The notes beneath the pieces were generated by a model, which saw nothing but the letters and a program-made list of their open reading frames with translations, had not been told where the DNA came from and ran no database searches. The position numbers and the translations under genes are program-made. 64,000 nt of DNA from Ophelia neglecta. Lineage: Eukaryota. Location: positions 80,662,001 to 80,726,000 of the forward strand of contig OZ260664.1 in the NCBI GenBank assembly GCA_965285935.1, in the 5' to 3' direction. Below are positions 20,201 through 63,954 of this stretch, piece by piece. The stretch's first letter is position 1, and each line of letters starts with the position of its first letter.

Positions 20201-23200
20201 AAACCCGCCAGCACATCAGGGTCGTCTTCAGGAGCCATCGCCTCCAGACGCATCAGTTCAGGGAACGTGCCCACCAGCGCACCAGACAAACCCAAACGTA
20301 AATCTTCTATGCCTGCCCGGCTACTACCACCCAAATCGGTGATGATTAAAAGAGCGTCGCCTGAGCCATCGAGTCGGAAGAGTTCCTCCTCAGATGTGAG
20401 TGGGCAGGACCAGAGAACGTATGGTGTGCCGTTATCCAGGGGGAGACCAGCATCTGCATGTAAGTATGTTGCGCACTTGAAAATTGCCCGCTGAATGTTA
20501 CAATAAAAGAAGAAATAGTACTTGTTTGTGTAGCTTAAAATGCAACCTACTTGAAATTGTAAAAGTGCAATTTTAATTTGGTAATCATTTTGAACATGAT
20601 GGTGTTTTCACAGCGAGACCATCGAATCGCACAACCACAACCCTCAGGAAAGTTGACCGATCTTCAAGTGTGGGATCTGACTCGCAGGTAATATTTATAG
20701 ATGAATCTAGTCCAGATATTATGTAACTCAGATACCTACAGCACTACTAACAAAGTATCCAAAGTGACTTTCTCCAGCTAGAAATTAACTAAACGTAGGA
20801 AAAAAAGATAAGCGTAGTATTAATAATCTGAGGCAACCACCTGTTGGCTTAGTGACAGTGGAAGTAGTATTAATGTAAGAGGCCAGATAACAAGAACTAG
20901 ACCCATCTGCTAAAGTCTGCATGTAGTTGTGTTGAATACTACTGCTGTATTAATTTTGCATGTTTCAGCCTATTGGAAGAACTTTGAATGTGAGTGGGGT
21001 GACTTAATGTTTGTTGATTTGTTAATTATGCAAAAATGTTTTGATATAATATTCTTTTAACCCTTTATCTCCTAGATGGTCCCTCAATTATAGTAGATCT
21101 CAGATAAATGGTTAATGCAATCAAGTTTTGTTGTAAAGCATGTTTGTTGGTACTTAGTTAAATTTCAGAAAAATTGAATTGTTTATATCACATTTAATTG
21201 GTATGTTTTCACCATAAGTTATTTTATTACATTCCAGATGATTTTATATGATTTAATTTTGATAATTAATTGTTGCACTTTTCAAAGTTATACACCATGC
21301 CCACACAGCTTACTTGATGTTCAGTAATACTGTTTGATGATGATCAGTTTTCATATGAATGTTTTTTTTACTAAGTTTGCTTTTTGTCAGTAGTATGTGT
21401 GGCTTATGCTTTCCTTTTGCCTGTTTTGTTGTGTTATAGGAGAGTTCAGCCTCCGATTCCAGTATATCACAGGTTTCTATGGTTTCTCAGGGATCTCTGA
21501 GCAATCGGTCGCCCCAACAGGGTACCCCTCGTCAGTCTACCCCAGAGCCCAAACGCAGCATAGCCAAGAGGAAGTCTCTCATTGAGCCTCCCAGAACCTC
21601 CGTCTCCAAGATAGGTAAGGAATAATCCATCAATAGGAAATAAACATCCTCTAGTGGGGCATGGCAAAAAGATAATTCTCATTGAACATTCGAAAAACTC
21701 TATCTCCCAGGCAGATGAGGAATAAGCTAACAAAAATTAAGTTAAATGTCCTCCTTAATATCCCTCCTGTAGAAAGAAAAGCCCATCAGTATATATATGG
21801 CTGGTAACTGGAGTCAAAGTCCACAAATATTAAATTTTGAAATCATTCCTTTGAATACTCCCAGTTTAGCAAAAACTCCTGCCTCACATTAATCAACTCC
21901 ATTTTCAACTTGTCTTACAGGGGTATCTTTTAAATTTGTATCTTTTCGGAAAGGGAGGCATCACTTGTTTTTTTAGAGAAATTGTTGGTGAATTCCTATA
22001 CATATTTCTGCTGTAGATCTGTAGCATTGCGCATTGTGTAGAGTTGCCAGTAGGGAGGCCACCTATCAGGAATGTTCTGTACTTACACTGAAGTGCTTGT
22101 CAGTTTTTGTATAGAAGATACCACAGACAATTTCTGAACCCTGGAGTAAAAAACATTGTTTTTCAATGCCTGTGTCTGTTATTTGAATTCAAAATAGTAT
22201 CCTACCCTACATACGTATTATTAAAGGTGTAATGATGTATATAAGGATGTAGTTTTGTGTTTTGATCCAGAGCCAAGAAGATCGAGTTTAGTAGCTCCAG
22301 GGTCCAGTCGTATGGCCCTGGCTAAGTCACCAAGGACACCAGGCTCCCAAGCAGCCAGCCCAGCCAAGAAACCTTCCCTTACCAAAGGTCAGTGTATCCA
22401 GCTTGTCTCTGGCACACAGTCAACCTACATCCCACTGCTCTCCATCATCCATCTTACTCCCAGGGACAAACAGAAAGCTGTGTGGATTCTCTGCCACATG
22501 GATCATATACAGTGGCATAATATTGTATAATTTAATGCCTAGTGTACTTGCAGTTTTGTTTGAAAATAAAAAACAATTAGTGCAAGAAAAAGTTAATTTA
22601 GGAAATATATTTGGGAAAGAGATAGGAGCAGAAATATCTTGAGTAAGAAGGTATTTATGTTGGAGAGCATTTGGAGGTTAACTTTGTGCCAGTGTACATG
22701 ACAAATTCTGGGAGTATGGTGAATATAACCAGCAGATATCAAGCATTGCTATCCATCTATCATATTGGTGGTTGGGGACCCAAATGTTTTTGGCTTGTAC
22801 CCCTAGGGCTTTGGCAAGAGGGTTAATTGAGGGGACATTTTTTCTTATCTAAGTCAGCATTACATTGCATGATGAAAGAGGCACTTTCCTGGTGGTGAAA
22901 AACTAGCATTTACAGCCGATACTGAACTATGTGGTATGTGGGGAGGGTTAGATTTACCAGATCCTCAGGTCACCGGAGCATCCCCTCCAAACGCCAGTCA
23001 CCAATGACAGACATCATAATTGGAATAGTCAACAAATGCTGGGCCGGCTGAGGCTGCTGAGGCACGTGTTGTGGAATGCCTCAGGGAGCAAGCAGGTATG
23101 GTCGTCTGCGGTCTTCATCTGTCCTTGACGGTCTGAGTTTTACTGAGCCCTGATCTAAGGCTAGTCTGCCACAGTCCTGAGTTTTATAAGATCTAAGTTT

Positions 23201-26200
23201 ACCAGACAGAGTTGAGAGTTGATGGCTAAGAACAGACATGGCTTATTAATCCCAGATGGGAATTTCCAGTGGAAAACTCCACATGCTTTTTAGAGTGAGC
23301 TCTGTTTTAAGGCTTTTAATCAGCCTATTAAATTAGCTTGTCACATAGTAAATTGTATATTTATTTGCACATGAGAGGAATGTGAGGTACTCTACTTTTT
23401 ATGAAGAAAAAAGAAAAAGCCACAAACTACAGTTATTTAACCCCAAACAGATTTGCATAGTTAATAGTATGATCAGACATATGTTTATGTGCACCATTTT
23501 TTGCCCAACTCCAGATGGCATAAATAGCGCCACAGAACATATATTTCCATCCCCCATATAGCTGTTTTGATCTGTCCAGAATGTATACATAAACATACTC
23601 CATTATGCTATTGAGTAGATTTCCAGACACTGGCAGTATCAGTATGCATGTAAATGGTTTTCTTTATGTAGTGAAGGTGATGCTGGGGATACCCTGTAGA
23701 AATGTCCATGTGCCACAGTGGCTGCCAGTGGCCGGGTTTATAGGCTGTGGCAGGCTTGATATCCTCAACTTTGTCATAGGTTATCAGGAGTTGTGATATT
23801 AGATCCTCTGCGTAATGTAGAAGTGTAGACCTGTTTCACTCACCCTAAACAAACCAAGGCTGCAAATTGAGAAAAATAGCAGAAAAACACCTGTAATTTC
23901 ACCCACCATTGCTGTCGATTTATGTATTGAGGTTATCAGCATGTGTTTGACTTGATAACTATCTGGCAGTGTAGAATGTCAAAAAGAAGTGTATTCACAA
24001 ATGCTACTACAGTTTAATATGCTATATGTTTTAGATTTAGAATTTATTTTTCCTGTAATAGCTTAGGAAAAGCAAAAAAATACAAGCTTGTGAAATAAAG
24101 TGCATCCCTGGTTTAAATTGTGGCATGCGGTGCTGTTTTTATAAACATGTACTTGGGCTTATTAAAGTGATTTATTTAGGCACACACCCATACTTATGAT
24201 TTATTTGTTGTTTAACGGTTGATACAATTATACCATTAAGGTGGAAAATGGTTTTGTCAGTGTTTTCTGTGCAATTATAGTTGGCCATGTTTTCTCTACC
24301 CTATGGCAATGCTTGTAAATTGTTGGCAGCAAAAATGACCATTTTAGTGAGAGTTGGCCTCCTGGTTGTATATGATAGATTGGAGCCAATGATAAAGATT
24401 GTCACACTTGATGAGCTCCAAACACAACTAATACACTCAGGTATGTCTTCAGGGGTTTATTGGCAATATTAGTGCCAAGGACACCACTCACTTGGCTAAC
24501 TATATAAGTAAAAAAAAAGTTGACAGGCAACCAAACCACTCAAAGAATATAGAAAGTCAGAGTTTTTGTTACTTCCACCATACAGAGTAACTATATACAG
24601 CAGGTAAATGCCAGCATGCAAACCATGCTACGAGCTGCAAAAAACAACCAATTCCACTGGTACTCTGTCTAAATCCTGAAGCAACGCTTTAACATAATTT
24701 ATTTTGTATGCCGATGGGATGTCTTCATCGGCCAGTTAGGGCTGATTAGTGAACTCAGCGGACTGATTAAAGAACTCAGTGTATTTTCCTGGCATTTACG
24801 TCTGTTGGCGGGCAATTAGAGCAGGCACTTCACAATGCACTGGTTGTTGAATCAGAAACCGTGTGAGATAGGTGATGATACACAGTGAGAGGGATGGAGC
24901 CATACTCCGGCTACAAACACCACTTCAGCTGTGAATATTTGTCAACAGCCAGTACCAGGAGAGCAGTGCTCAATGCTGGCCTGCGCTGCATGTTTGACAC
25001 AGCAGAATAGCAGGATTACCAATCACTGGTGTGGGCGTCTGGGATGGAAAGTACTTACTGCAGTCTCGGGGTATGAGGCTCTGACTTGGAGACTGACAGG
25101 AGCCTAGACAGAAGATGTGTCTAACCAGAAATGTCAGAAGTGGCCATACACTAGACTGGAAACTACAGCCTCCAACACAGTAATAATACTAGTGTTATGT
25201 TCTATATGAACCTGATTGTGATTATCTAGACGTAGTCCAGACACAGGAAGGGTGAGCACTCAAGGACTCAGCTATCCACCATTAAAAACAAATAATCAGA
25301 TGGACTGCAAAATATACTCTGAACCACCGATTGTAGAAAGTGATTTTTTTGTGTTGGTTCGGGGCAAAATTGTGACTCAAACTGATCGATAAAGTAAGCC
25401 GTGGCTTGTTGTGGAAAAAACAGTTGCTCAAATCCAGTATCAGCAGTCTGCCTGAATTCAAACATGCTTTCGGCTGGCAGAGCCGTCCGTGAGGTTGTGG
25501 CCAGTGGCATGCAGTAGGCACCTGACTATAAACCAGTACTTTGTAAAGGACGCCTTTAAATGTATGAGATACCTGGAAGACTGATCAAAAACACTTGACC
25601 CTGTCAACTCCTGGTTCCTCTGAGTGATCATCACTACACTGAGTTATACCTACCTCACACAGACACCAGGACCCTGTACCTATATGTCAAGGTGGAGTAT
25701 TCAACTGGATTTAGATATGGATCTAAACCAAAGTTTGTCCCATAATAATCCTGGTGACATCGCCCTGGATTTGGAGACGGTAGATGATCTGGGGTTTGCT
25801 GAGGTGTTTGCCCATCTGTCACAAGCCAGTCGAATGCTTCTGGAGGAAATCGAAGGTAATCAATTCTACTGGTGTTTTCTTTGTGGTATCAAGTGTAACA
25901 TCATCATTAACAATTATGTTGAAGTGTTTTCATTTCTAACAGCCTGGAGCAGTTTTTTCCTCAAGACCAATGCTACCTTTAGGAATTGATTTGGTAATTT
26001 GAATTTTTTCCGCATAAACATTGACACTGAGCATAGACGTATTATTGTCAAAGCACCCTGACTGCTCATATGTTATCTTTTAACTACAATTTTATGTTTT
26101 TATGTGCCTCTTTTAAAGTCTGTATTAAGAGGGCAAAAAATGATATGAGTAAACTGAGGTGATGTACTTTTACCAGGGGCTGTGCCACATAGACTGTATT

Positions 26201-29200
26201 ACCGTATTTGTTAAGAGGGGTTTTCTTCATAGCAGTATCACATAAAATTTATGGCATTTGTCAATGAGATTAATAACTGCCCTCTATGTGTACTGGTTGG
26301 TTACTGGCATATTAGCCCTGGAATGCATTTACAAAACCCTAAGAAGTATCCAGGAGATGAGGGTTAAAGGTCATACACCGATGCCTCATCTGCCCTAAGG
26401 AGATGTATCCCACCGTTCTTTGAGGAGATTCATGTTTTTTGAGGAGATTCGTGTTCTTTGAGCTGAATCTTGTTCTATAAAATGTTTCTTTCCTGGTAAT
26501 TGAGTCCTGTCTCAGACTGTCTGATGTAACTTTCTGTCCAGCATTTCCTGTAATTGAGTAATGGCAACTGCTGCCAGCTGAGATTTCCGCCACTTACATC
26601 TTGAGAAAAAACCTCATTCTTACTTCCATAGCAATGCTCCAAATAGAAAGGAAGGAATTTAATATAAATCTTAACGGAAAAAAGACAAAGCATCTCTATT
26701 CTAGGTTACATTCAATGGCAAGAGGGAGATCTGCTGGCAAAGAGAAGGCAAAGGATTGGATATAAATCACAGGCAACAAGGCAAAAAGTCTCTAGTCCTG
26801 GGTTAAATTTAATGGCAGGAATGTGTTTCCCCGGCATTTATTTATTGGCGTGAACGTAGACTGCGTTAACCATCCCTGCGTGTCAGTGATCAAGTATTTT
26901 TAGTTTGCCAATCAATTTTTAATTGAGTATTGTAGTCAGTGTAAACTATGCTGGGAATAAGAATTCAGTGTTTTTGGTGATTATCTTAGCTTAATAAAAA
27001 TTAAATGGTATTATTGCCACGGAGTAGCACATTTGTAGTGAAATGTGTCTCGGTATTCTAGGTGATGAGTGAGCCAGCTATGATATATACTGGTACTGAC
27101 AACTTTTGATTTGATTTCCTGGGCCACATTGATCCTCAGTTAGATTGTAAACTGGGCTTGGATTTCAGGTCTGCTTTTATTTCCTAAAGCTCTTAAACAC
27201 AACATCCAGCCAACAAATTGTAGCAGACAGTTTGCTTGTAAATTAGATGAATTATTGTAGGCTGGGTTGTCAATTTAAATTGGTAGTTTTGAAAAAGATA
27301 GCACAAGAAAAGTTAAATTTTGTTTACTAATTAAATATAGGTATCAACTGCACTAGTACCAACCAATGTCATTTTGTTACTAGTTTGTTTGTTCTATTCA
27401 CCATTAAACTATTGTGTATGTCAGAGCAGTATTAATCATACAGCCTTAATCTATGTACCTCCAAACATGTACCTCTCCATTACTTGGTAGCCAAACTGAC
27501 TTTTCTCGATCCTGTATTGAGCTACTTACCCTGCTCACAGTGGCAGTACACGAGGTACATGTTATAGCCGGTGATCTTAGCAGGTAACCTGTTGCCGTCT
27601 GTAAGCAGGGTACCATCTACTATAAGCCGATGGATGTCAAACTGATTGGAAGTAACAACATTTAGTTAGCCCCATGACTCACATGGAAAGTATGTCCAGC
27701 ATGTCTTTGTATCTGACTAATTATTGATTACTTTAACAGGCGTTTCCCCGGAAATTCTAGGAAGAGACTTATAGGTATCCCAGCATGCTCTCTGATCTAG
27801 CCCTGACATATAACTAGCCACAGCTGTGCCTTCCTGGAGTTGACTTACAGCGGCACATTGGTCATCAAACGCAACATTTTAAAATCTGTTGCCCATTAGT
27901 TAGTTACTTGTAATCTAGCTGAGAAAAGTAAAATGATAGGAGGTATCTTTTGGAGACTTTGAAGTGTTTTTGACGGCCGTCTGCATGTGTCCACTCACAC
28001 CTGGCAGATCAGGTTTCCTGCTTGATTTTCTTGTGTGTTTTTTATCAATCTGTCATACTTTATGATCATGAACAAAGTGTTACATTTAATTTGCAAGAAC
28101 TCTAAAAAGACAGCTGTGCCTTGCTGCATGTAACAAACTTTGACATCAAGAAAGGCTATGCATGTATATGTACATGGATATAACTTAAGTAACCTGTTAT
28201 TAGATTGCAATCTCATTTAAGTCACTCATTATTCCATTTGAGGCATTGTGGTAAACTTTATGCTGGTTTGCTTCTACCTACAGCATAATATGATTGGATA
28301 ACTTGGCTAGATGTTGATTGCAGGTTCCTAATTAATATGTTTGACGTAGCATGCCAACCCTTAAACACTTCTTGTTGTCAGGATTTGATAATTCGTTGGT
28401 TTACACATGGAGGCATTCTGGTATTTTACAAACTCTAAATTTTATTCTTGGGATATGAGTGAAATAGTCAGTTATAAAGTTGCGATCCATTTTCTTCTGC
28501 TGGTGATAATGTGGAAATTTCTTGCCTGTGGTTTATCGAAAAGTCACACAAACGGTATGTATTGTTCTATGTGTTATGGATCATATAGATATCTTTTTCT
28601 GCAGGGAACATATGGAGGAAAATGTAAAACAGTCTCATGTTTTCACCAAGTTTCTGAAGTTTGTACAATTTGAAGAACTAACTTCCTTTGACTAGGTTGA
28701 AAGCTGCCTGGATACACCTCCTTGGTACACTGCCCTAACTCAGTGTACCTGTGGCACACATGCCAGTCGTTAGCTCATGTGGCTCTAATATCTGGTGTTC
28801 ATCGAGAGCTTTCTGCTGTCAAACTTCGGTAGGTTTAATAAGCCACCATCTCTGAACATCAACATCTATGGCGCTGTACTGTCTGATTCATTTCAAAGAC
28901 CTCAAAATTACCTAAAAATACACCTGGAATATTGTCTTTTATATTTGCAAATCCAGTAATTATCAAAGTGGAAAATTCAAATTTTAATTGGAAATTTATT
29001 GGTAGCAATTGAAAAATTCAGCCTTAATCATATATCTTTTAGGAAATATCTGTGCACTGGTGTTAATCAAAAATAATTATATTGAATGATTTAATAAATC
29101 AACTTGAGGTATTAAGGTTAGTGGGTTTCTTATCTATGTGAGTTGTCCATGTAAAGAGGGTCATATATTGTATTAGCTGGGATATCATAATCCCAGGTGT

Positions 29201-32200
29201 GAGGTTAGCCGGCCCAGCCTGAGGCTTATCTACTGTACCTGGAGTGAGGGAAAAACCAACAACATAAAACTGTATAGTGCTTGACAAAGCATGGGAACAC
29301 TCAAATATTAATAATAGTTAAACCTTGATAAAGTACAGTACATTAGTTAATACATGTACACTTACCTCTACAAGTAAAACTGGCATATTCTTGTGTTTTC
29401 AGATGTGTCACGGAGAAAAATTTATACACAGGTTTTTTCCTGTTATTATTAGGTCTTAGGTCTACAACCTTGAAGTGTGTCTTTTTTTTTACCAGAAGCG
29501 TGAATGTTTTTTATCAATTTTAGTGCAGACTGTTTTATTTCTCTGTACATCTGGATCAAAATGATAATTTTAAGCAGACTATGTGCATGTATGCATGTTT
29601 CTAGTTAGTTCAATGTGGCAGGCAGTCGTGCTCAATTTCATTGAGGATATGGAAGTTTTTATCAAAGATTGCAACTTGTTTGTACTTTTTATACTTAGAT
29701 AAACTAAGCTATTTTTATATAGTTTTCAGATGGTCCCTGTTAGTACAAATTATTGTAGTGAACCAGATCACCACATCTCTATTTTAGACTCTGTGTAATT
29801 TACTTTCATCCCTCCCCCCTTCTCCCTTCCCCCTCCCAAAGTGTGCAGAGTCACCACACCCCCAGTCCAAGGTTTGATATAAGGGCACTATGGTGTGTTG
29901 AGGTGAAGCGTGTTGAGGTTGACCGGTAGCCAGTCTGGAGACTGAGTAGTTCCTGGCATGACTCCACCCTAACTCTATGAGACTGGGGAGGACTGCTACG
30001 ATGAGAGGGGCCCTGTGGTAGCCAATCAGAGTAGTTCCCGACACCTCCTTATCCCCCCCCCTCTTCCCCTTTGAGACTTGGGTGGACTGGTATGTTGAGA
30101 CGGGCCCTGTGGTGACCAGCCAGGGGCCCTGATGTGCTCCTGCTGGAGTGCTCCACAGTGCAGGTTCCAGGATCACATCTGTGCTCTATCTAACTGTTTT
30201 GCTTCAACATGTGTTACATAGGTAAGCATGTGCAACGAACTCCCAGCACACACTATAGAGCTATAAAACACATCAAACCGTGAGTGTATATGGCCGCAGG
30301 TCCAGTTTGGCTTTGTCAACTAAAGCATGCAGTCATGGAATGCTCTGTTACCAGGATATAATCATGATAATTAGCCAGATATATTTATTCCTCAGTGGAA
30401 TGCTACAAACCTATCAATTCTAGACTATCTGATCAGCACGGCAAGTCAATTTATTTATAGTGAATGAGTGGAGGAAAATTATTCCATTTATTACCAGTGA
30501 GAAAACCAGGATTTATAGTATCGAGTTTGGGGAAAATTGTGATACACTGCAAACAATAGTGATATGATTTTCTCATCGCTTAACATTCATACATTTGTGT
30601 TCAGGATCTGTGCATTTTCAACATATTGTTTCAGGTTGGATCAATTTATCTTGGCAGGTTGTACTTTTTACTGTGCCTAGTGTTGCATGGAAACATCAGT
30701 AGTTCCATGCTGATGTGTGAGGCTTGATGGGAAATAGGTAGACTGCTATAGGAGCATCTAAAACACTGAGTGTCGAAAACTGAAAAATGTACTGGTGATT
30801 GTGGCCAATTAATAGGAAGACTGGCTGGGATGTATGGTGACCAGTCTGGCAATTTTCTGTCAAAATCTCTGTAAAGGTCCTTTGTATAAGGTTTAAGTGT
30901 AGATGTCTGTAGAAATAACATCCATGCTACTGGGATTGTGGTAGTTACAATAAGGGGAATCTGATGGCCGAACATTGACAATAGGAGCTTGCCGTGTGAA
31001 CTCACAGGGAAAATTATAGCCCATGGTAGGATCATAGTGTAAGGGATATACCAATAGACTGGTGGATCGTTGATGTATGTGTTACATTTGTAAACAGTCT
31101 GACATGAAGTGAAGACAGTGTTAAAACTGTGTACCATTTGGTATATTTTGACATATCCAATGTATGTCCGAGACACATTACACTGTGGGGTCAGCAGTTT
31201 TTTTCACTCCGCCGTGAAAACATTTTGTCTGTTGATCAATGATCATTGATAGATGGCCAGGGCGTTATTCACAGGCCGTAGAAAGCTAGTCAGATCATAT
31301 TTATAATGTATGCTTGGTTGATTTAGTACAAATATATATATTATTAGTGTAATTTAGATATATTTAACACATAAAGGCATGTTCATGTTTTAAAAGGGGT
31401 AAAGTTCTCCTATACATGGATGAAGTTTACACATCATATGGACATTCCTGTCATAGTGCCTGACGACCTCTGGGATTATAGGTGGTCCTGTCAGCAGTAA
31501 ACCATATCACCTTTCAGCAGAAAAGTGCGGAAAATTGGCCTTAATAGTATGTTAAACTGCAGATCCCGCTATATGTCTCTGTTCTGAAGGAGTTTTTGAG
31601 GAGTGAGTTATTTAGTAATGTAAACATTAAGCTGAGCAGGAGTGATTAGCCATTGAGCAGTAGGGATTAAATCATGGAGAAAGTCACACAGGAAGCATAT
31701 CACTTCAACAAGTACCAAATGAAAACTTAACTCTCCAAATTACATGTACTTGTGTCTTGAGACGCTACAAGGGTCAAAGGTCATTCTAGAACAAGTAAAC
31801 TAAAGGTGGATTATATCTACTTGTAGTTTTACCCTGTGAGATGCTGGCACCACATCTTCTATGGGACTGGAATGTACACTATATATTCACCGGCTGATAT
31901 ATCATGAAGCTGAACATGGAGTACATGTATTCTAAGCCAACAAATTGGCATGTTTTTTCCCTGTGAATACCACAAGTTTTCTTGACTTTGTTTTGACTTG
32001 GGAGTGGTTCAACTCAGCAGACCAGCGATGATCACTCAGCGGTACGGGACCAGCGAGTTACTCATGGATTGGTTTTACCAATTCTAAATCTGGATAAAGT
32101 CAGAACAACATAGCAACAGACAACAAGGATATTGTTAGTCAGTAAAAGTCAAAATCTATCCTCCAATGCCCAAAAGTATCAAATATTGATAAACACACAC

Positions 32201-35200
32201 AGTAGCCATTATTAGATTTGGATCACAGGCTGTCACACAATAAGCTGGGGAGTAAAGTGTGAAATCTATAATTTAGTGTGTTAGTCAACATCTGATTGGT
32301 CATTTACATTCACCAGCAGAGTTATGTATTACATAGGGAAGTGAATATGATGTATAATGATGTACTATTGGGTTCTTAGCCATGCAGAACCTATCGAGGC
32401 ACCATGCCTGATATGTGACAGGTGATTCTGATTTGTTTTCATGATAAATTGGCTCTTAAGATGTGTTTAGGATGAAGAAAGTTGAAAATACGCTTACCAC
32501 TTTGCGATTTGCCCCCACATCCTGGGAGGAAACTGCAGAATTTCAATTTGATCACAAGATCATCAAAGATACTAGTGATTTAAAAACAAAATTGGATAAA
32601 TTTTGACTGGAGTTCCTCCAAGGCTCCTATATAAGACAGTGTTGCTTAGCAACATATTCATAAAAAGCAGGTGTTCTGCACTTGACCGCTAGATTAAGAT
32701 ATACATGTACTTCACAATCGTTGGATACTTGTAAATAAGTGTGGATTCCTGTTCAGACAAGATGTACACACAACTGAAGAAGATATCTCTCCCTGAGATC
32801 AAATTGAAATTAGCATTGAAAGGAGTACAAAGGCGATTCCAATATTGTGTTCTAGGTGGCAAGGTGAAAGGTAAGCATCCAAACTATTTTGATTATTTGG
32901 ATTCTTTCAAATATCAACATTATTTATCATTAAAAAGACATTCACTAAGGCTAGTGGCTGTCAATTGGTCTTTACTAGTGATTGTGTTATTATTTATCAT
33001 TTATTCCAACAGCACTGTTCTGAACCTTTTTTTCTTCAGATTCACTTACAAATTTTATTCAGACCAATAGACTCAAAATTTGCATAATTTACGATTGTCT
33101 TTCAATATGATTAGTAAAATGAAAAATTGAAGAAAAAAAATTCGACCAGAAAATCAGTCCAGTGGGGATCCCATGCCTTTACACAATGCAATGTCGTGAT
33201 GTGGTTAGTAGATATGATGGCAGATACATGTATTTATAACACAACAAGCACGTGATGCCTGGCCCTAAACAGAAAACAGACCATAAGAACAAAGTGCAGG
33301 GAACTTCCTCATTTTCTTGTGCAAAAATATGAGATTTGTTTTTGGGAACAAGTCAGTTGATAATTGTCCCACAAACATACATTTACAGTATATACCTGTA
33401 TTGTGAATGGGAGATAGTGTCATAATTAATGTAAATTTTCAACAATTTTCAACTTGAACAAGTTACTTTAAGTGGCCTGAGAAGCTCATTGTCCCATAAA
33501 CAGTTCATATTGATGTTAGTGGGAGAATGACCATCATGACTATATAGAGATGACTTCTGTCCTAACTCTTATCTCACAGTTTTATTCTTTTGGCATGGGA
33601 AAAGTACGGTCATAGGATGGTCCTTTCCCCAAAGAACGTTGTCTAACTAAATGTGTTCTGTTTGTACAGCGATTCCTGGTAAATCTAAGTAGTATTTAAG
33701 TTTTCTTGACTTAGTCTTATTTATGATAAAAATGAATCTAGTCAGTCTGGGCAGCATGGGCTGTATACTGCTTGGAGAAAAGAGTGAATATCTTTATTTT
33801 TTACTGGGTCAGCAGTTCATATATGGCATTTCCTTCTCAGAACTTCACAAGCAGAGGGTGTAGTTGTATACATACTGGTTATATACATAACATACATTGT
33901 ATACATACTGTGTTAATGCTGATACTGAAGGGTGTGAACTTGTTATCAGGACCAAGTCAATTACTCACAGGAATTACATATACACTGTACATACATGTAT
34001 ATTAAAGTAGTCAGCAGTTCCTGTCATGGAAATCATGCTTTCACCAATCCACTCAATATAATTTCAAGGATGTAGATTCAAAGGTCCAATCCTTTGTCCG
34101 ATTCCGATATACCACCGATCAATTCAATCATTCAAGCAGCCAGTAATTGTCAGTTTGCACAATGCCTTGTGAGACAGCTGTCATCCTCAGATATACATGT
34201 TTGTGTACATCCCACACAGCTGGCTGTAGCATGGCTGTTCAGGGGGCTCCAGATCTTCTCATCTCTTTTATAATGTATATAATAATAATAATAATAATCA
34301 TCATTTTATTCAAGAACATAGATATTGCTACAGAGATATTACATAAATATAAAGAAAATGACACCGAGAAGCAGACTCTGCTTATATGGGACTCTGTAAG
34401 AAAAAAATGAACATACTGTTTACAAACCATGGCAGACAGGATTTAACTACTATAAAAATTATCATCATTATCAGTGATTGAGTTCATGGCCATACTGTAT
34501 TCATATTGAAGGACTGAAAGGAGTGAATTCAAATTTAAAGAAAACAGCCTTGAGTTCAACATTGGCAGGCTCACTGTTCTGTGAATGAAATCACTTTATT
34601 AAACTGACAAGAATTATTTATTCATTGTATATTTTTTTTGACTTTGTAATTGAAAGAGTATGACTCACGGTAGATTTGACAATTGATAGTTTTGAAGGCC
34701 CTGACATATGTCTTGTAGCATGAAGTTGGCATTTTGCTTCCAACATGCGATGGTTTAGCTGATAATAAAGGTAGTGGCTCCCCATTGATTTGCTCCCTGT
34801 CTAGTTATATTGAATCACCTTGGAGGCTCTTGAACCATTGTCCCAGATTTCTCATGGCTGATGTATACATCAGCAAGGTATTGTAGAATTAAAGTCCCAT
34901 GTAATGTCTTGAGGCCCTTGGCTGTAAGTCTTCTTAGGGTCTTGGAGGCAGATATGGGGATGGATAGCTTGTGTAGGTTTTTGTGACTGAACATGGATAA
35001 TTGTGACTGTGTGATATACCTGGGCCTTTAGCTTGTAATTAGCAGGAATGTTATCAGCAGTTTAGGAACATGGATCTAAAGCTGTCAGTTTTTTCCTTCA
35101 AGTTTTATCTGTGACTATCCAGAGAACAATAATGGTGACATACCGGTATCTGAGAGGGGATCTGACTGTGAGTCTCAACACAACATGTTCAAATACTAAA

Positions 35201-38200
35201 AATCCTCTAGGTACCTTATTCTTAGACGACAGATTTGCCATGCTACCAAGCTAGGTAGGACATTTGGCTTTGATCCTAAGGGTCAATTTCACACCTGGAT
35301 CTGGTTTTATTGAGAAGGTAAAAACCTGAACTTGCAAGTTAACTGTTGTTAAGTGCAAGATGTTGGTATAAAAAAGAAGCTGTCATTAAAGGCGAGAATG
35401 TTACTGGATGTGAAATGATAGTGGAGACTTGCCCATGAAATTGCTGTGATTGTTCATACCCAGCTGCTAACAGACAGTGGAGAAAGACTGTAAAAGATGA
35501 TTGTTTTCCTATCAAAACTCATTTGTCAGTTTCTTTAAATATAGAAACATAGATAAGAGAATGACTTAAGAAATGGGCTCGCAGTTAAGTTCCCTGTTTA
35601 GGAGAAAGGAGGATGATGTTGTGGAGGTTTCTTGTTCAGAGAGTGGCCCTGAGGCTGATGGGTTTGTGGAGTGTGAGGAGACCAGCCATGATGACTGTCT
35701 TGTGTCCTGGGAGTCCCTACTCAGGCAGGGCTACAGGGATAGTCTGGCTGAAGACACCAGTGCGGGCCAGGAAGGAAGCACTGAGGGCTACCGGGATAGT
35801 CTGGCTGAAGACAGCAGTGCTGGCCAGGATGAAGGCACTCAGTCTGAGTCTAGTATGTCTTTTTCTGTGGATTCTCTGGCAGATAACTGTGACATTAAGC
35901 GAGACACTTGGCCATCGCCTTTGGCTCCGTGTCAGCTTCCAGAGCTGGTAACTTCCAACTGGAGCTCTTCTCAGCTTCACACTGGTAAGACTTCAAACTT
36001 CATTCTGTATTACCAGGGTAGATCATCTTCACACTGGTTATACTTTAAAGTTCATTTTGTATTAGATCATCTTCACACTGGTTATACTTCAAACTTCATT
36101 CTGTATTACCAGGGTAGATCATCTTCACACTGGTTATAGTTTAAAGTTCATTTTGTATTAGATCATCTTCTCAATGTTTAGACTTCAAAATTCATTCTGT
36201 ATTAGATCATCTTCACACTGGTTATACTTCAAACTTCATTCTGTATTACCCGGGTAGATCATCTTCACACTGGTTATACTTTAAAGTTCATTTTGTATTA
36301 GATCATCTTCTCAATGTTAAGACTTCAAAATTCATTCTGTATTAGATCATTTTCACACTGGTAAGACTTCAAACTTCATTCTGTATTACCAGGGTAGATC
36401 ATCTTCACACTGGTAATACTTTAAAGTTCATTTTGTATTAGATCATCTTCACACTGGTTATACTTGAAACTTCAGTCTGTATTACCAGGGTAGATCATCT
36501 TCACACTGGTTATACTTTAAAGTTCATTTTGTATTAGATCATCTTCTCAATGTTTAGACTTCAAAATTCATTCTGTATTAGATCATCTTCACACTGGTTA
36601 TACTTCAAACTTCATTCTGTATTACCAGGGTAGATCATCTTCACACTGGTTATACTTTAAAGTTCATTTTGTATTAGATCATCTTCTCAATGTTAAGACT
36701 TCAAAATTCATTCTGTATTAGATCATCTTCACACTGGTAAGACTTCAAACTTCATTCTGTATTACCAGGGTAGATCATCTTCACACTGGTAATACTTTAA
36801 AGTTCATTTTGTATTAGATCATCTTGACACTGGTTATACTTCAAACTTCATTCTGTATTACCAGGGTAGATCATCTTCACACTGGTTATACTTTAAAGTT
36901 CATTTTGTATTAGATCATCTTCTCAATGTTTAGACTTCAAAATTCATTCTGTATTAGATCATCTTCACACTGGTTATACTTCAAACTTCATTCTGTATTA
37001 CCAGGGTAGATCATCTTCACACTGGTTATACTTTAAAGTTCATTTTGTATTAGATCATCTTCTCAATGTTAAGACTTCAAAATTCATTCTGTATTAGATC
37101 ATCTTCACACTGGTAAGACTTCAAACTTCATTCTGTATTTCCAGGGTAGATCATCTTCAAACTGGTTATACTTTAAAGTTCATTTTGTATTAGATCATCT
37201 TCTCAATGTTAAGACTTCAAAATTCATTCTGTATTAGATCATCTTCACACTGGTTATACTTCAAACTTCATTCTGTATTACCAGGGTAGATCATCTTCAC
37301 ACTGGTTATACTTTAAAGTTCATTTTGTATTAGATCATCTTCACACTGGTTATACTTCAAACTTCATTCTGTATTACCAGGGTAGATCATCTTCACACTG
37401 GTTATAGTTTAAAGTTCATTTTGTATTAGATCATCTTCTCAATGTTTAGACTTCAAAATTCATTCTGTATTAGATCATCTTCACACTGGTTATACTTCAA
37501 ACTTCATTCTGTATTTCCAGGGTAGATCATCTTCAAACTGGTTATACTTTAAAGTTCATTTTGTATTAGATCATCTTCTCAATGTTAAGACTTCAAAATT
37601 CATTCTGTATTAGATCATCTTCACACTGGTTATACTTCAAACTTCATTCTGTATTACCAGGGTAGATCATCTTCACACTGGTTATACTTCAAACTTCATT
37701 CTGTATTACCAGGGTAGATCATCTTCACACTGGTTATACTTTAAAGTTCATTTTGTATTAGATCATCTTCTCAATGTTTAGACTTCAAAATTCATTCTGT
37801 ATTAGATCATCTTCACACTGGTTATACTTCAAACTTCATTCTGTATTTCCAGGGTAGATCATCTTCACACTGGTTATACTTTAAAGTTCATTTTGTATTA
37901 GATCATCTTCTCAATGTTAAGACTTCAAAATTCATTCTGTATTAAATCAACTTCACACTGGTTATACTTCAAACTTCATTCTGTATTACCAGGGTAGATC
38001 ATCTTCACACTGGTTATACTTTAAAGTTCATTTTGTATTAGATCATCTTCACACTGGTTATACTTGAAACTTCAGTCTGTATTACCAGGGTAGATCATCT
38101 TCACACTGGTTATACTTCAAAATTCATTCTGTATTAGATCAACTTCACACTGGTTATACTTCAAACTTCATTCTGTATTACCAGGGTAGATCATCTTCAC

Positions 38201-41200
38201 ACTGGTTATACTTTAAAGTTCATTTTCTATTAGATCATCTTCTCAATGTTAAGACTTCAAAATTCATTCTGTATTAGATCATCTTCACACTGGTTAGACT
38301 TCAAACTTCCTTCTTTATTTAGATCATTTTCACACTGGTAATACGTCAAACTTCATTTTGTATTGGAGTGATGTTCCAGTGAAGGGTTTAATTGTTTTCA
38401 ATTCCTGGCAGTTGCCTTACAGCGTGTTATGTGTTATTGGAATTTGACTGTGTACAGCTCTTATAAAGCAGGCTGTAAGCTCACCTAATATTTGTTTATC
38501 TGTGTGGCTCGTGTAATGATCTGATTGACTGGGTTGGCATGATCCAATATTTTTCAAAGTTTGATTTAGACATGTGCTGCATATTACCATGACCCATTGA
38601 ATGATCCATAGATTTGTGTTAGGGGTTCCAGGGCTATATCTAAACAGGTACACTGTGCTTATCTAAGAACGGCCATGTTTTAATAGATATTGTGAATTTA
38701 ATTCAGGTAATCCTGTTCAGTTCTTCTTTAAAGTTACCAAAATGATGCGATACAAGGAAGCTAAGATTTGAAGGGTTTAAACGCAATAAGCTAATTAATT
38801 GCCAATTTCTCTAGATATACACAATGGCTTAATCAGTATTGGCTGGGTCATTTACTGGGCTGTTTTTCTACCCCCTCCCCCAACTCGTGACTGGTGTTCA
38901 AACTATATTAACTGGGTGTCTATCAACACCACTACATCTCAAGGTAGCTTTGTAAGGGTCCATGGAAGAGAAACAGAATCAGGCACTATTTCACATGTCA
39001 CATAAACTATGCATGGCATTGACTTTTTCAAATGCAATAAAATGAATTCATTGCTTTGAGCAATTTGCATGATAATGAAAAACTGCACAGACACTTTGAA
39101 AAGCCCACCAGCAACCAGTTGGTAATTGCCTTTAAGTTTTCAGGACCCCATTTTCTCACACAAGTAGACTCCAAGGAATGACAGTCTCATCGCACCTATT
39201 ACAATCTCTTTTAAACTGTACACTCTATTAAAATATAATTGGCAGACCCAGGGAAAGGTGGAAATAAGGGTTTCCCAGTCTTTTTTAAACTGCATTGTGC
39301 ACATAAAAATAGAATGCACTAATATTTCATAGAGCTAGTCAGGTGGCAGATGTATTGGAATGTATATGTCTTAAACTAATGGTACAAATTTTGTAACCAG
39401 TCATTATGTATATATTTAGAATGAGGTTTTCTTTGATTTTGAGCTGCGTTTATGTTTTTTATCAAACCTGTTTTTAATATGAAATATATATATATACATA
39501 TAGAATCTGTGCCATACTTGAGTGTTAGCTATGCCAAGCCAGGTGCACCTGTTTCACTCCTGGATGTAAATCATATTGGTACTAGAATCACTAAGTCAAA
39601 AACCTGATGATATTTGTAGTGGTCTGCCAGCATGCACAGAGCAGAGCACAGAGCAGACGGCTGAAAACACAAGGCACTTCTACCGAGCTAAGAATCAATG
39701 ATACAGCACAGCCATTGAGGCTGAAAAAATAAACAATACTGACCAAAAGCAGGAGGGCCAATGTGTTTTATGCTCCTTATATTGTTATCTTATCTTGATT
39801 CTACTACCTACAGGCTAGCTGATAAATCTTCCTGAACAGTTTAAGGTGCATGGCTTTCCAAGTCTTGCGTGGCTGCTCAAGTCTTCCGTCAGACCTGTCA
39901 CATGGCAGACCGGTCACACGCTCTGTCAGAACAGGTTTAACAGATTACATTTAGTGATTGAGGATTATGGTGGCCTGATGGCAGTTAAGGGAGACATAGG
40001 TAATACAATAGCAAAGAGCGCCTCATTGGCAGTTCAAGAGTTGTGGAGTGAACCAAGCGTGACCTCAACCACCAAGATACAGCATGTTGTGGGTTTACTG
40101 GGCCTTGGCAGGTCTCTGTATCAAAAAGACCGTTTACCAGCTCTCAGCCCCCACACACCTACAGGGTGTCTACCACAGTCCAGGCACACACACTCTCTAC
40201 CACACAGCGCAATGAGCTGCTCTCTGGCCAAGGGCTGGATGAACCCCCCAGACCTGCTACAGCTAAGGGACCCTGAGTCCCTGCAGGGACCCCAGGGAGT
40301 TGGTGGAGTACATCTCTGGGGCATGACCCCCTGGCATGGGTACAAAGAATTCAGGGAGGACTTGGTGGGAAAGTGTAGTCGATTCATTAGTGATTATGTA
40401 TTCAGCCATCATTCAGGTGAGCAGGTTTATGTCAGTCTTATAGATATTGATGGAACAATATGTTTTTTTAAATATAAAATCTACATTTAATAGAAGCAAT
40501 GCCCCTGGTATGCTTGACACATTCAGGAATTACCAGATCTGAATAATGCAGACATGAGAATTTTCCACGGATTCGCGGATTTCCGAGTTTTTTGCCCCCC
40601 TTTGAAACCCCCCGGCACGCCCCTGGCATGCCCATGCCTCGGCTGGCATTTTAAGAGTTTTTCAAAGTTTCCCATTCTCATTCCTGATAATACTATGAAT
40701 AGAATGAGAACAAAAGGAGATTTGCTTTCCAAATCCTTCAATATGTGTTCAAACTTTGTAATTATACACACAGTTGAATATTAACATTGAATTATTCGAA
40801 ATAAGTCTTGGAATCCTTATTCTTTGTTCCTGAAGTGCAATTTACAGACCTGCCTTTTGACCTAATCAGGCTGCAATTTGAATTAAATATTTCCTAGGGT
40901 CCTTAAGGGGATCTGTTGTTTCAGAGTCAGGAATGAGGATTTGATTAAGCTGGTAATATGATAATATAAATCAATGGATTAGTCCTACCTGACCTAACAG
41001 GTTGTTCTGCCTGGTGTTGGATTACACACCACAAATATGAAATGTACTAGTCTATTTAAACGTTGTATACACAGTTGGTTGTGAATAACACTAAAACTTA
41101 GGATATTAAGTACAAACTCTGCTGTAATATATAGTATATAAATAAGGTACTATCAAAAGTATTAACACACAACACAATTCTTGATTGCACCAGCCACCAC

Positions 41201-44200
41201 CTTTTTTTTACAATTTCAGTACCGGCCGTAATTCAGTTTAAATGGCTGAAAAAAGTAGAAATTTTATGCCCACTGCAAAGGTTAGAAAAGTGTTTCACAT
41301 AAGCCATCCCTGAAAGTGGTTACCGAATCTGGTGGGTGGTCACTGAGTATGGTTAGCCGCCGGTGGTAACTGAGTCCTGTGGGTGGACACTAAGTATGGT
41401 CAGCCACCAGTGGTTACTGAGTCCTGTGGGTGGTCACTGAGTGTGGTCAGTCTCCGGTAGTCACTGAGTCCTGTGGGGGGTCACTGAGTATGGTAAGACA
41501 TCATTGGTTACTGAGTCCTGTGGGTGGTCACTGAGTATGGTCCATGGTCACTGAGTGGGGCTCATGATATGGTCGGCCATTGGTGGTGTCTGAGTATGGA
41601 TGGGTAAGGTTGGTGGCAAAGGTTCTAACATCAGTCTGCATGGTCTGTGCTAAAGGCTTCAGCAGCATGGGTTGAAATAAACCTATATCAGTCTGTGAAA
41701 TGCTCAAGGGGTGTCATTATCAAATAATAGTCCCACTGAGAAATGAGGGGTCTAAATTTCAGTTTGTTTGGGAAAATATAGATTCTGGCAGACGCACAAA
41801 AAACTGTGTAATAGATGTTGTTTCTCTGGCTATCTGTCAATGACATGGCCACTGAAGCAGGAGAATTTGGAGGGAAGGATGCCCTGCAGTGTTATAATAT
41901 AGATGTTTAAATTGTGTCTCTTTGTATTTAATACTCAGGCTTTGTTGTTTGGATAACTACAAGTAGTCTCCTTCACTGGGCTGGAAAGACTAAATAATAA
42001 TTAGAGGGTATCAGTTCTCTGGCAATAGATGAATTGCATGTGAACATGGAATGCTTGACTTTAACTTTTAGGTAGATGACTTTATCAAATAAATTGAATG
42101 CTTGGGTTTAGTTACTGGTCAATTAAGGTAAATATGTCTACCAGTAAATGGCAACTCTGACATGAGGAAGTATTTTGCTGAGGCCAAAATCCTGTCACTG
42201 GTTCCAATGGTCCCTTGACCTGACAATAGTCATTATATTTACATCATATTCAACCTGAAAATGACCAATAGACCTAACTTTATTTAAACATGTATATTTT
42301 ACAGACCAGACAAGAAATAAGGCAGGAAGGCCCAGCAAGAACCACCTGAAACACACCAACCAACCGGATCTAGTCAGCAATGCCATCGACAGCTCCCAGG
42401 CTTCGGAGGAGATCTCCCGTCTGGAGGCCCTGTGTGAGTCTCGCACCAAGGAACTCAACTATATCAAGCTGCAGCTGAAACAGAAGAACACCGGCTTCGA
42501 GGCCATGGCCATCCTGGTCAAATACCTCACGCAGGAGGTGAGCATGGCTGCGTTTACATCTCAGACCCTGTGGCAATAAATATTAACACTTACCTCAAAA
42601 CTGTTAGGTAAACGGTACAAAATATTAGCCCTTTCTGATTTAAAGTCTAAAGGCATATGTTTGAGAAATGTCACAGACAATGTTAGGCTAGAATAGAAGC
42701 AAAATAGGTATTTTTGTTCATGTTTCTAAAGCAAAGTGATAAAAATATGCAGAAAGAGCAGGAATCTATGGTAGACATCTTGCTGTAGATATAGACTGTA
42801 GATAAACCACATGACATGTGGTAAATGGTGGTAGTGTATAGGATTTCTTGGATTACAACATGAGTTTTATCAAATTTAAGGCGATACTAGTTCTAAACCA
42901 ATGAATGTCCCAAATGCTAAGTTTGTACCAGCTTTAGTAAGTTGTTCAGTAAAACGTTCTAACTTTATGGTTGTTATTAAACATCAACTTGTTTGTAATA
43001 TATGTATATCTATACCCCCTGTGTGAGCAGTCAATGAAACAGCCATGAATAATTATCTGTGAGCAGTATCTCCTTTGATCTGCGGCCTTTTTTTTTACAT
43101 ACAAAATGTTGATTTAGAAGAAAACATATTCACTATGCTGGGGTAAAATCAATATTTCTTTGTAGTATAACCCAGTTGAAGTTTCTCAGATGAAAATTAA
43201 ATGTCCTGAAATTTACCTTTGAGTCACCAAACAGATTCAACACCACAACAAGCTTTAATGTAGTAAAGCTGCTAGTTTTTGTCTGCTTTTTTCAAAATAT
43301 GTCATTAGACTGGATTAACGAGTTGAAAATATTGACTTAATGGCGTGTATGAGAAGTGATTTTCTAGATATATAATAAAAACCTTGACTGTTTACCCATG
43401 TTTTCAGCTGGATGCCTTCTCCTGTCCTGTAGTAACAGCCCAGCTTCAAGAAACCAAGGAGCAGCTGGTTAAAGCCAAACAACACTTAGGTATGTAAAGT
43501 ACTACCTCAAAATCAAACCGTTTTCAAAGTCCTTGGCGGTATTTTTTCAATAGTTTTGCTGTTCCTGTGCAACTATTCAAGCATTCTGTCCTTAGCTGCC
43601 CTTATCCTGACTGTAGATGAATGATATCTTGAGTGTGCCATTTTGCAAACGACAGGAAATTGCCTCTAGATTGTGATGAATTTTATACTAAACATCACGA
43701 CTGGTATTTACAAGCATTTTTCTCCCATAGAATCTCATCAAAATCACTTTATACACATAAAGCAAATAGAATTTATGTAAAAGATGTACACCTAGTTGGA
43801 TTACTGTCTGTTGGTGATAGTCAATTAGCAGATTTTACAGCTGGTCTCCACATTGTTATCAAGTGACAAATATTTGTGGTGAAAATTCCAGTATGATGAC
43901 AAAAAAAGTATATGCATTCCATGATAATCTATGGCTGGTGCTTGGACTGCACAGGTATGCCATTTAAAGTGAATGAACTTTACCTCTCATGCAGCATGAC
44001 TGGCAGTGGTCATCACTGACCAGCCCTGAGAACGGATTGTAAACTGACTTTAGTAAAAAAGAAATCATGATACTTTATTCTTATATCTTAATTTAATCAG
44101 TCTATCATTCATAGGACGATGAATTTTGTGTCCAGTTACATTTGGTATTTGGACAACTTTCTGAGTTTTTTTTTTAATCTAGAAGAGTACAATATGTGCA

Positions 44201-60479: not shown

Positions 60480-60686
60480 CTAGATCCACATGGGCTCCCA
60501 TTCCTCCTCCTCATCATCATCATCGTTGTCATTCATCACCACACCTTGGAAGAGTTGGTTGAAGCATTTGGAGCTGGTGCTGTTAAAATGGGAGTAGGGA
60601 TCCCCGCGACTCAGGCTGGCCATACATAGCCAGCAGAAGTACGAACGACACTTGGTACAAGTCATCTTGTTGCAACCATCAACTTT
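60480..60686 (-). CDS. RNF14: RNF14 coding exon 6 (RING2 with catalytic Cys in GCNKM)
   Basis: [21 protein letters not shown]...DPYSHF...EWEPMWI*. Confidence 0.94.
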   Translation of the reverse strand, partial: [68 protein letters not shown]

Positions 60687-63600: not shown

Positions 63601-63954
63601 CAGGTGGCAAATGATGGACCTCTTGGCAGTCACCTGAAATTAAGATGAATATTCATAAGTTCATGTACAGGCTAAAACACATCCCCAGCTTTACAAATTC
63701 TGTGCATTAAGACAGCTAACTTACCCTTGTTAGCACCCACTGAGATGACAAATGGTTGGGGCAGGTCTAGGTGAGTCAGTTAACTTACCCTTGTTAGCAC
63801 CCACTGAGATGACAAATGGTTGGGGCAGGTCTAGATGTGCAGCAAACTGACCCTCGGGCCGGCCATCCTCCCCAGTCTGACAAGTGAATATAACGTTCTC
63901 ATATATGCTATCCAACGCCATAATTTCATCTTCTTGTGCTTCGGCATCACTCAT
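60480..63954 (-). CDS. RNF14: E3 ubiquitin-protein ligase RNF14 (RWD-RING1-IBR-RING2); exons 63954-63789, 63633-63512, 62577-62005, 61708-61486, 61199-61027, 60686-60480; 487 aa
   Basis: MSDAEAQEDEIMALDSIY start; RWD LPSDYPSTRPP...CKWL; RING1 CQVCFQEKLG..C..F..CNHVYCKECM; IBR YCPRKAC...CPMCNYVFCIYCKMVYHGVSPC; RING2 [30 protein letters not shown]; acidic tail; all GT-AG with matching phases, 1464 nt total. Confidence 0.96.
61027..61199 (-). CDS. RNF14: RNF14 coding exon 5
   Basis: DEVKKLRDEF...LMEKRYGRKVI...[11 protein letters not shown]; phase 1 to phase 0. Confidence 0.93.
61486..61708 (-). CDS. RNF14: RNF14 coding exon 4 (IBR)
   Basis: VKELVSAELFARYDRLLLQSSLD...SPCKIKA; phase 0 to phase 1. 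Confidence 0.94.
62005..62577 (-). CDS. RNF14: RNF14 coding exon 3 (RWD end, linker, RING1)
   Basis: LSRLCKHLDELWEE...HPAQ; phase 0 to phase 0. Confidence 0.94.
63512..63633 (-). CDS. RNF14: RNF14 coding exon 2 (RWD YPxxxP)
   Basis: GDCQEVHHLPPVVLLFQLPSDYPSTRPPCFTLSCKWLTKSQ; phase 1 to phase 0. Confidence 0.92.
63717..63834. repeat. Perfect 54-bp direct duplication (63717-63770 and 63781-63834) of the RNF14 exon-1 end plus its splice donor
   Basis: TAACTTACCCTTGTTAGCACCCACTGAGATGACAAATGGTTGGGGCAGGTCTAG occurs twice, 64 nt apart. Confidence 0.95.
63789..63954 (-). CDS. RNF14: RNF14 coding exon 1 (RWD N-terminal half)
   Basis: ATG at 63954; donor AGG|GTAAGT, phase 1; upstream acceptor ccttttcag at 63969 implies a non-coding exon beyond the window. 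Confidence 0.9.

Follow-up and report, generated by a model that had tools for sequence, protein, structure and literature searches.

A probable ATIP1-type leader exon in a CAP-Gly-bearing MTUS gene of Ophelia neglecta

Studies of ATIP1, a short product of MTUS1, treat it as an angiotensin AT2 receptor partner and as a 'mitochondrial tumour suppressor'. To our knowledge, the first exon specific to this isoform has so far been treated as a vertebrate feature, and we know of no CAP-Gly domain in vertebrate MTUS1 or MTUS2. The ATIP isoforms have their C-terminal 395 residues in common (PMC3566609). The ATIP1-specific exon, known as exon 8 of human MTUS1, is driven by the internal promoter P3 (PMC2706840, PMC3566609), and an internal promoter lies next to it (PMC2706840). 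In mouse Mtus1A, exon 1 serves to target the protein to mitochondria (PMC5015389). We analysed a stretch of 64,000 nucleotides (nt) from Ophelia neglecta (assembly GCA_965285935.1, contig OZ260664.1, positions 80,662,001 to 80,726,000 of the forward strand), called the window throughout. Judged by its sequence, most of a spiralian gene lies in the window; the gene combines an N-terminal CAP-Gly domain and long disordered exons with the C-terminal coiled coil of the MTUS1/MTUS2/CCDC69 family. Within a long intron of this gene lies a short candidate exon at 32762-32870, here called the leader. The most likely reading is that its architecture is that of vertebrate ATIP1/Mtus1A and that the leader is homologous to the ATIP1-specific exon.

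The leader covers 109 nt, beginning at an ATG (32762-32764) with A at position -3 and ending in phase 1 at base 32870. Its donor, AAG/GTAAGC (slashes mark splice boundaries), agrees with the MAG/GTRAGT consensus at eight of nine positions. Sequence, length and donor are as the original prediction had described them, and the phase fits the acceptor at 42305. The encoded peptide of 36 residues has a net charge of +8 and a single acidic residue. A repeat search found the leader region not to be repetitive, and a Pfam scan of the leader peptides gave no match. A short upstream open reading frame (ORF; 32706-32735, + strand), consisting of an ATG and nine codons followed by a stop, was also seen inside the putative 5' untranslated region of the leader.

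The acceptor, ...tttacag/AC at 42304/42305, precedes an exon that reads [D]QTRNKAGRPSK...QPDLV...GFEAMAILVKYLTQE/gtgagc. This exon is open only in the frame that borrows one upstream base, so that a phase-1 donor is needed; the leader, a Met-started coding part ending in a phase-1 donor, fits it. The start point and phase of the common exon are shared by its homologues in a fish, Capitella, Lingula, Ostrea, Saccoglossus and Glandiceps. The canonical upstream exon ends at base 22387 with the donor AAAG/GTCAGT, and a Logan transcript from a close relative (P0160), reading ...TPSK/DQNRNK..., uses the equivalent of the junction 22387/42305. The splice pattern of P0160 and the donor at 22387 together place the leader in a 19,917-nt intron directly 5' of the common exon. 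The leader thus shares the strand of the gene and occupies the last intron before the exon that all isoforms have in common, a placement seen also in a fish, Saccoglossus and Glandiceps. Six candidates combining an ATG, an open frame, a GTRAG donor and phase 1 occur in this intron, at four donors, of which the leader donor is one.

Vertebrate leaders for comparison came from a word search that took as its seed the C-terminal region of a homologue from the scorpion Centruroides. A search of representative sequences with window exon 50713-51030 gave MTUS2 and no vertebrate MTUS1 short isoforms, and a word search with a family profile was dominated by coiled-coil words (8000 candidates, 10 matches, no vertebrates) and yielded P0160. 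Non-human vertebrate MTUS1 short isoforms, 435-447 residues long, share a strongly conserved leader of 40-41 residues; 33 distinct leaders were collected, near-invariant from manta ray to birds. The human ATIP1 N-terminus as given in the original prediction agrees with these 33 sequences, and the count there of eight identities between the window peptide and that N-terminus in an ungapped 20-residue alignment held when checked by eye only. The prediction that the leader would splice at a similar distance before the FEA motif was likewise borne out: the F of GFEA is residue 101 in the window model and residues 100-105 in five vertebrate short isoforms, and it falls at about residues 112 and 105 in two hemichordates.

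As with the vertebrate ATIP1/Mtus1A exon, the leader would serve as an internal first exon, placed in the intron that precedes the first exon of all isoforms. Both coding parts start with Met, that of the window running to 36 codons and those of vertebrates to 40-41, and both end in phase 1, as checked for the fish Enoplosus, where a leader exon of 121 nt is followed by an exon ([V]DKNKPKASSR...) at the position and phase of window 42305. Both peptides are basic and nearly devoid of acidic residues, and both carry the core [KR]-[FIL]-[SN]-L-x-x-[ILV]-x-[LV]-[KR]-L-x-x-[KR]-G in the same register from the Met. They differ in that residue identity is only about 30%, in that the C-terminal half of the vertebrate leader (...LSGxKKSTVVF...) is without a clear counterpart in the window, and in that the window host gene carries a CAP-Gly domain.

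When a hidden Markov model (HMM) of the vertebrate leaders was run over the 3465 stop-free six-frame segments of the window, the leader ranked first (11.9 bits, E = 0.024), HMM positions 6-26 aligning to leader residues 7-27, and the runner-up segment reached 7.8 bits. This is a moderate match to the vertebrate profile, not a strong one. A joint test combined the score with the independent requirements of coding strand, right intron, in-register Met, GTRAG donor and phase 1. Simulated introns contained on average 4.2 candidates each with ATG, ORF, GTRAG donor and phase 1. The best candidate in 1800 such introns scored 9.0 bits and none attained 10 bits, as against 14.7 bits for the leader (p < 6e-4). 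In the scan with a leader HMM that had been proposed as a check, the leader does rank first in the window; its bare score is borderline, and it becomes significant once the exon requirements are taken into account. Two simulations used relaxed filters, under which the real matches were still recovered. With a profile of hemichordate and vertebrate leaders, the leader was still the best match in the window (12.7 bits), and in the reverse direction, a search of the window leader against 383 kb of other real loci returned the fish leader exon itself as the best match.

Further HMM matches were treated as noise or rejected. One in 34818-35027 (- strand) contains an exact RLTAKGL and is weak and on the wrong strand; another in 34076-34270 (+ strand) is gapped (...SSSDIHV...LFRGLQIFSS...), weak and without a Met. 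In Capitella, a weak match at 10474-10530 was among those rejected for lacking a Met, for lying on the wrong strand or for a preceding stop. It is odd that the three best matches to the leader profile in 64 kb all lie within 2.3 kb of each other.

The clearest finding, for which there is strong evidence from sequence comparison, is that hemichordates appear already to have the leader exon. The vertebrate HMM gave as its top match in the Saccoglossus kowalevskii locus a leader exon with 21.8 bits (E = 2e-5). The leader exon of Glandiceps talaboti was found with E = 4e-4 by the same HMM and with E = 5.5e-8 when the Saccoglossus leader was the query. Both exons lie in the orthologous intron, just 5' of the first common exon. 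An HMM built from the window and Capitella leaders only also gave the Glandiceps leader exon as its top match in the 87-kb Glandiceps locus. The RefSeq isoforms retrieved for the two hemichordate genes are all long (1590-1792 residues) and without the leader exon, and so none of them can begin at it. The presence of the leader exon in hemichordates would mean that the isoform predates vertebrates.

The hemichordate and window leaders share the intron, the strand, phase 1 and the core motif, and in both cases the host gene carries a CAP-Gly domain. Where Glandiceps reads ...ISLSGIQLKIRLATKG... the window reads ...ISLPEIKLK--LALKG..., with 10 of 15 aligned residues identical by a manual count on the alignment of ten leaders. 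The hemichordate core, however, has a two-residue insertion, and by the E-values above the hemichordate leaders are much nearer to those of vertebrates than the window peptide is. Simple pairwise searches fail to connect the hemichordate leaders with the window.

A candidate counterpart was also found in Capitella teleta. The orthologous intron of this species (locus L003) is 2.4 kb long and contains a Met-started ORF (L003:11491-11598) that shares 12 of 36 residues with the window leader, ungapped from the Met. The two are reciprocal best matches in the six-frame translated loci (13.2 and 12.4 bits), scores attained by none of 300 and none of 150 simulated loci, respectively. A MAFFT alignment of all ten leaders is coherent, with M1, L10, L17 and G21 invariant. 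In profile-profile comparisons with hhalign, the spiralian pair (window and Capitella) matched the vertebrate leaders with P = 5.7e-5 and a probability of 66% (0/400 shuffles attaining the score), the hemichordate leaders with P = 0.0035 (1/150) and the hemichordate and vertebrate leaders combined with a score of 24.4, P = 1.7e-5 and a probability of 78.5% (0/150). Across the comparisons with vertebrate or deuterostome leaders, the probability ranged from 66 to 80% (78-80% with the deuterostome leaders) and P from 1.5e-5 to 5.7e-5. Capitella alone against the deuterostome leaders scored 16.4 (P = 0.002), which none of 120 shuffles attained, the null maximum of 16.1 being close. The suggestion in the original prediction that the leader is ancient is supported by the clear exon in the orthologous intron of two hemichordates and by the reciprocal-best Met-started ORF in that of Capitella.

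Short isoforms with other leaders were met in the same gene family. In the MTUS-like gene of Patella vulgata, isoform X6 (RefSeq XP_050415055.2, P0285) is an annotated short isoform in which an alternative first exon is joined to the same common exon ([D]QNRNR...), so that the short-isoform architecture does exist in a spiralian. Its 18-residue basic leader, however, has no detectable likeness to the window leader beyond the basic character and an RG[I] element. The annotated mollusc alternative first exons that join the same common exon in phase 1 encode leaders of 18 residues (Patella) and 42 residues (Batillaria, L004:10001-10127); the end of the Batillaria leader (...SDSRKEYVIIREP) faintly resembles that of the vertebrate leader (...SGCKKSTVVFQTV). 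The myristoylation-type leaders that start with MG, found in the MGCSGSK isoforms of vertebrate MTUS1 and in the MTUS2 short isoform and CCDC69 (PMC11621681), are likewise short leaders from alternative first exons in the same gene family. They differ in having the motif MGxxxS, and the vertebrate ones splice further downstream. The window has a second candidate first exon with ATG, GTRAG donor and phase 1 (35573-35672, + strand), which begins MGSQLSS..., a start resembling an N-myristoylation signal, and has the donor AGT/GTGAGG; no homologue of its peptide was found in the other loci.

The host gene is encoded on the + strand, with an exon for the CAP-Gly domain (16 to about 2260; E = 6e-20 by Pfam), large Ser/Lys-rich exons and then coiled-coil exons to 51746. 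Its place in the family is supported by a search with exon 50713-51030, which found 157 relatives named MTUS1, MTUS2 or CAP-Gly linker-like, in gastropods, bivalves, Lingula, Lineus, Capitella, hemichordates, echinoderms, amphioxus and chelicerates. The C-terminal coiled-coil module carries the family blocks ...ESLKAVLE... and ...NKRLSM-NEEL-W... Pfam PF27558 (MTUS1_CCDC69_CC2) is precomputed on the exon product of a relative, and a local Pfam scan of the window coiled-coil module gave no match. The nearest relatives are the ENA contig L001 (85% identity) and the Logan transcript P0160; L001 begins 1.7 kb 5' of a later exon and does not extend to the leader region. An N-terminal CAP-Gly domain on an MTUS-type gene was seen in the window (16-2295, + strand), Capitella (L003:1063-1269), Ostrea, Saccoglossus, Glandiceps and Patiria, and, by protein name, in amphioxus. 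This combination has led to inconsistent database names for such genes: 'restin homolog', 'CLIP1-like', 'MTUS1 homolog' and 'daf-12-interacting protein 1-like'.

Table 1. Features of the candidate leader exon, its host intron and the hemichordate leader exons (positions are those of the window unless a locus is given)
Feature	Position	Strand	Remarks
Leader (candidate alternative first coding exon)	32762-32870	+	ATG, 36 codons + 1 base
Splice donor GTAAGC after AAG	32871-32876	+	Eight of nine consensus positions
TATA-like octamer TATATAAG	32628-32635	+	127-134 nt 5' of ATG; possible core promoter element
Host intron, 19,917 nt	22388-42304	+	Between last isoform-variable upstream exon and first common coiled-coil exon
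Canonical upstream exon, 3' part (long CAP-Gly isoform)	22255-22387	+	Competes for acceptor 42305
First common exon	42305-42540	+	Phase-1 acceptor, QPDLV motif, coiled-coil start, GFEA motif; proposed splice partner of leader
Saccoglossus kowalevskii leader exon	L008:59791-59914	Same as gene	124 nt, phase 1, donor TTG/GTATGG
Glandiceps talaboti leader exon	L010:72654-72771	Same as gene	118 nt, phase 1, donor CTG/GTATGG

From these features we infer how the leader may be expressed, from which promoter, and that it may have a targeting function. Transcription would begin at an internal promoter, possibly served by TATATAAG about 130 nt 5' of the ATG. Only five + strand sites in the 64 kb fit TATAWAAG, this octamer among them; having been spotted after the fact, it is weak evidence for an internal promoter. 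The 109-nt coding part would be spliced from 32870 to 42305 in phase 1, in place of the canonical upstream exon. The product would be a short isoform of roughly 490-500 residues, without the CAP-Gly domain and the disordered parts, that starts with the strongly basic 36-residue leader. By analogy with mouse Mtus1A, for which mitochondria are the documented destination, the leader would then carry the coiled-coil module to an organelle. The description of the ATIP1-type leader as a mitochondrial targeting signal, taken up in the original prediction, is indeed found in the literature for exon 1 of mouse Mtus1A (PMC5015389). In the mouse deletion series, proteins with 17 or 24 residues deleted were still mitochondrial, and those with 27 or 33 deleted were cytosolic (PMC5015389). 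Loss of residues 1-24 thus leaves the mouse protein mitochondrial, and the conserved core is not the part demonstrated as necessary for targeting. This core (leader residues 7-27) only partly overlaps the segment needed in these deletions, so that targeting of the window leader to mitochondria is proposed by analogy with the mouse protein.

We consider that 32762-32870 is probably a real exon homologous to the ATIP1-specific leader exon; this reading is supported as the most likely one and is not proven. The sequence features, the statistical association with the vertebrate leaders and the related exons in other animals are matters of observation, and several of the results, including the partial overlap just described, count against the homology or against use of the exon. 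The searches of the protein collection gave no transcript or protein with the leader or with donor 32870, and a word search with the leader was blank (61-194-residue proteins). P0160, which is the collection's sole full-length relative and forms a cluster of one member, is spliced from the canonical upstream exon. The Capitella ORF is without a strong phase-1 donor, the best being CTG/GTCGGT and GAG/GTTTAC. Neither the Saccoglossus leader alone nor a hemichordate-only HMM picks out the window leader, which is due to the two-residue insertion in the hemichordate core. A default profile of vertebrates plus Saccoglossus scores the window leader slightly lower than the vertebrate profile does (10.6 versus 11.9 bits), and a deuterostome HMM with every column as a match state loses it, the hemichordate insertion costing deletions. 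The taxonomic distribution is patchy: at the orthologous position, Capitella is positive, and the orthologous introns of Patiria (starfish), Lingula, Ostrea (oyster), Batillaria (snail) and Limulus gave no leader counterpart. Metagenome scans add little, the scan with the leader giving no match and that with the first common exon giving one intronless arthropod-like ORF (L007), which is uninformative. Finally, 8% of simulated windows attain the 11.9 bits of the leader (empirical p about 0.08), so that the bare HMM score is not significant window-wide, and since the ORF was chosen in the original prediction for its ATIP1 likeness, a selection effect attaches to tests of the window peptide by itself. 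Free of this effect are the simulation across introns and the findings in Capitella and the hemichordates.

These points could be taken to mean that the segment is no exon at all, a chance ORF followed by a chance donor in a long AT-rich intron, its likeness being noise picked out by a reader aware of ATIP1. Some four to six combinations of ATG, ORF and donor are indeed expected in an intron of this size, the window-wide p is only about 0.08, other weak profile matches lie nearby (34818-35027 on the - strand and 34076-34270 on the + strand) and the protein collection gave no leader-bearing transcript. Chance, however, fits poorly with the p < 6e-4 of the joint intron simulation, with the reciprocal best match to a Met-started ORF in the orthologous Capitella intron, with the reverse search, whose best match in 383 kb is the true leader exon of the fish, and with the spiralian-only profile, whose best match in 87 kb is the true leader exon of Glandiceps. 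We regard it as the least probable of the readings considered here. Somewhat less improbable, and in our view still unlikely, is that the leader is a real first exon kept in some spiralians (the window species and Capitella) whose likeness to the ATIP1 leader is convergent or coincidental, the two short basic leaders having arisen independently where the gene offers a convenient point of entry. The link between window and Capitella is statistically firmer than that between Capitella alone and the deuterostomes, where the score of 16.4 (P = 0.002) stands close to the null maximum of 16.1. Five loci are negative, all of the leaders are basic and nearly without acidic residues, and the different 18-residue basic leader of Patella at the same junction indicates that unrelated first exons can arise there. 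Basic composition as such does not account for the match, as shuffles that keep composition never attain the observed profile-profile scores in the vertebrate, combined and Capitella-alone comparisons. Convergence also leaves aside that the match is positional and in register from the Met, with M1, L10, L17 and G21 invariant in ten sequences, that exon length and phase are alike, and that the residues agreeing with the vertebrate consensus are partly different ones in Capitella and in the window, as common descent predicts. Homology to the ATIP1-specific exon is thus the reading we prefer.

Two further features of the window were noted. A tandem or satellite-like array occupies the host intron at about 35920-38300 (+ strand), with start-to-start spacings of 44, 52 and 96 nt and repeated pseudo-ORFs reading ...HTGYTSNFILYYQGRSSSHWLYFKV...; repeats run from about 35727 onward, 3' of the MG candidate exon at 35573-35672, and at 36-38 kb the GC content falls to 0.31 and the GC skew turns negative. 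A neighbouring gene on the - strand (60480-63954) has ORFs that by eye resemble an RWD domain and RING/IBR zinc fingers, as in an E3 ligase like RNF14.

If the leader is present in hemichordates, for which the evidence is strong, and in spiralians, for which it is moderate, the short isoform would be older than the receptor with which ATIP1 has been associated. A broader proposal, whose chances we put at about even, sees in the short isoform, made from an internal promoter and a leader exon, a trait that the CAP-Gly/MTUS gene had in ancestral bilaterians and that has persisted for more than 500 million years in annelid-like spiralians, hemichordates and vertebrates. The ATIP1 isoform would then predate the vertebrate angiotensin system, and its first function would have depended on the leader, through targeting of a microtubule-regulating coiled coil to an organelle or to mitochondria, rather than on the receptor. 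First exons of this kind (109-124 nt), at which none of the retrieved hemichordate RefSeq isoforms could begin, are recoverable by profile scans of MTUS introns. If the leader does exist in both hemichordates and spiralians, the best-conserved part of the leader (residues 6-24) would mark a function that the mouse deletion series does not explain, and invertebrate models would be usable for studying the ATIP1-type leader.

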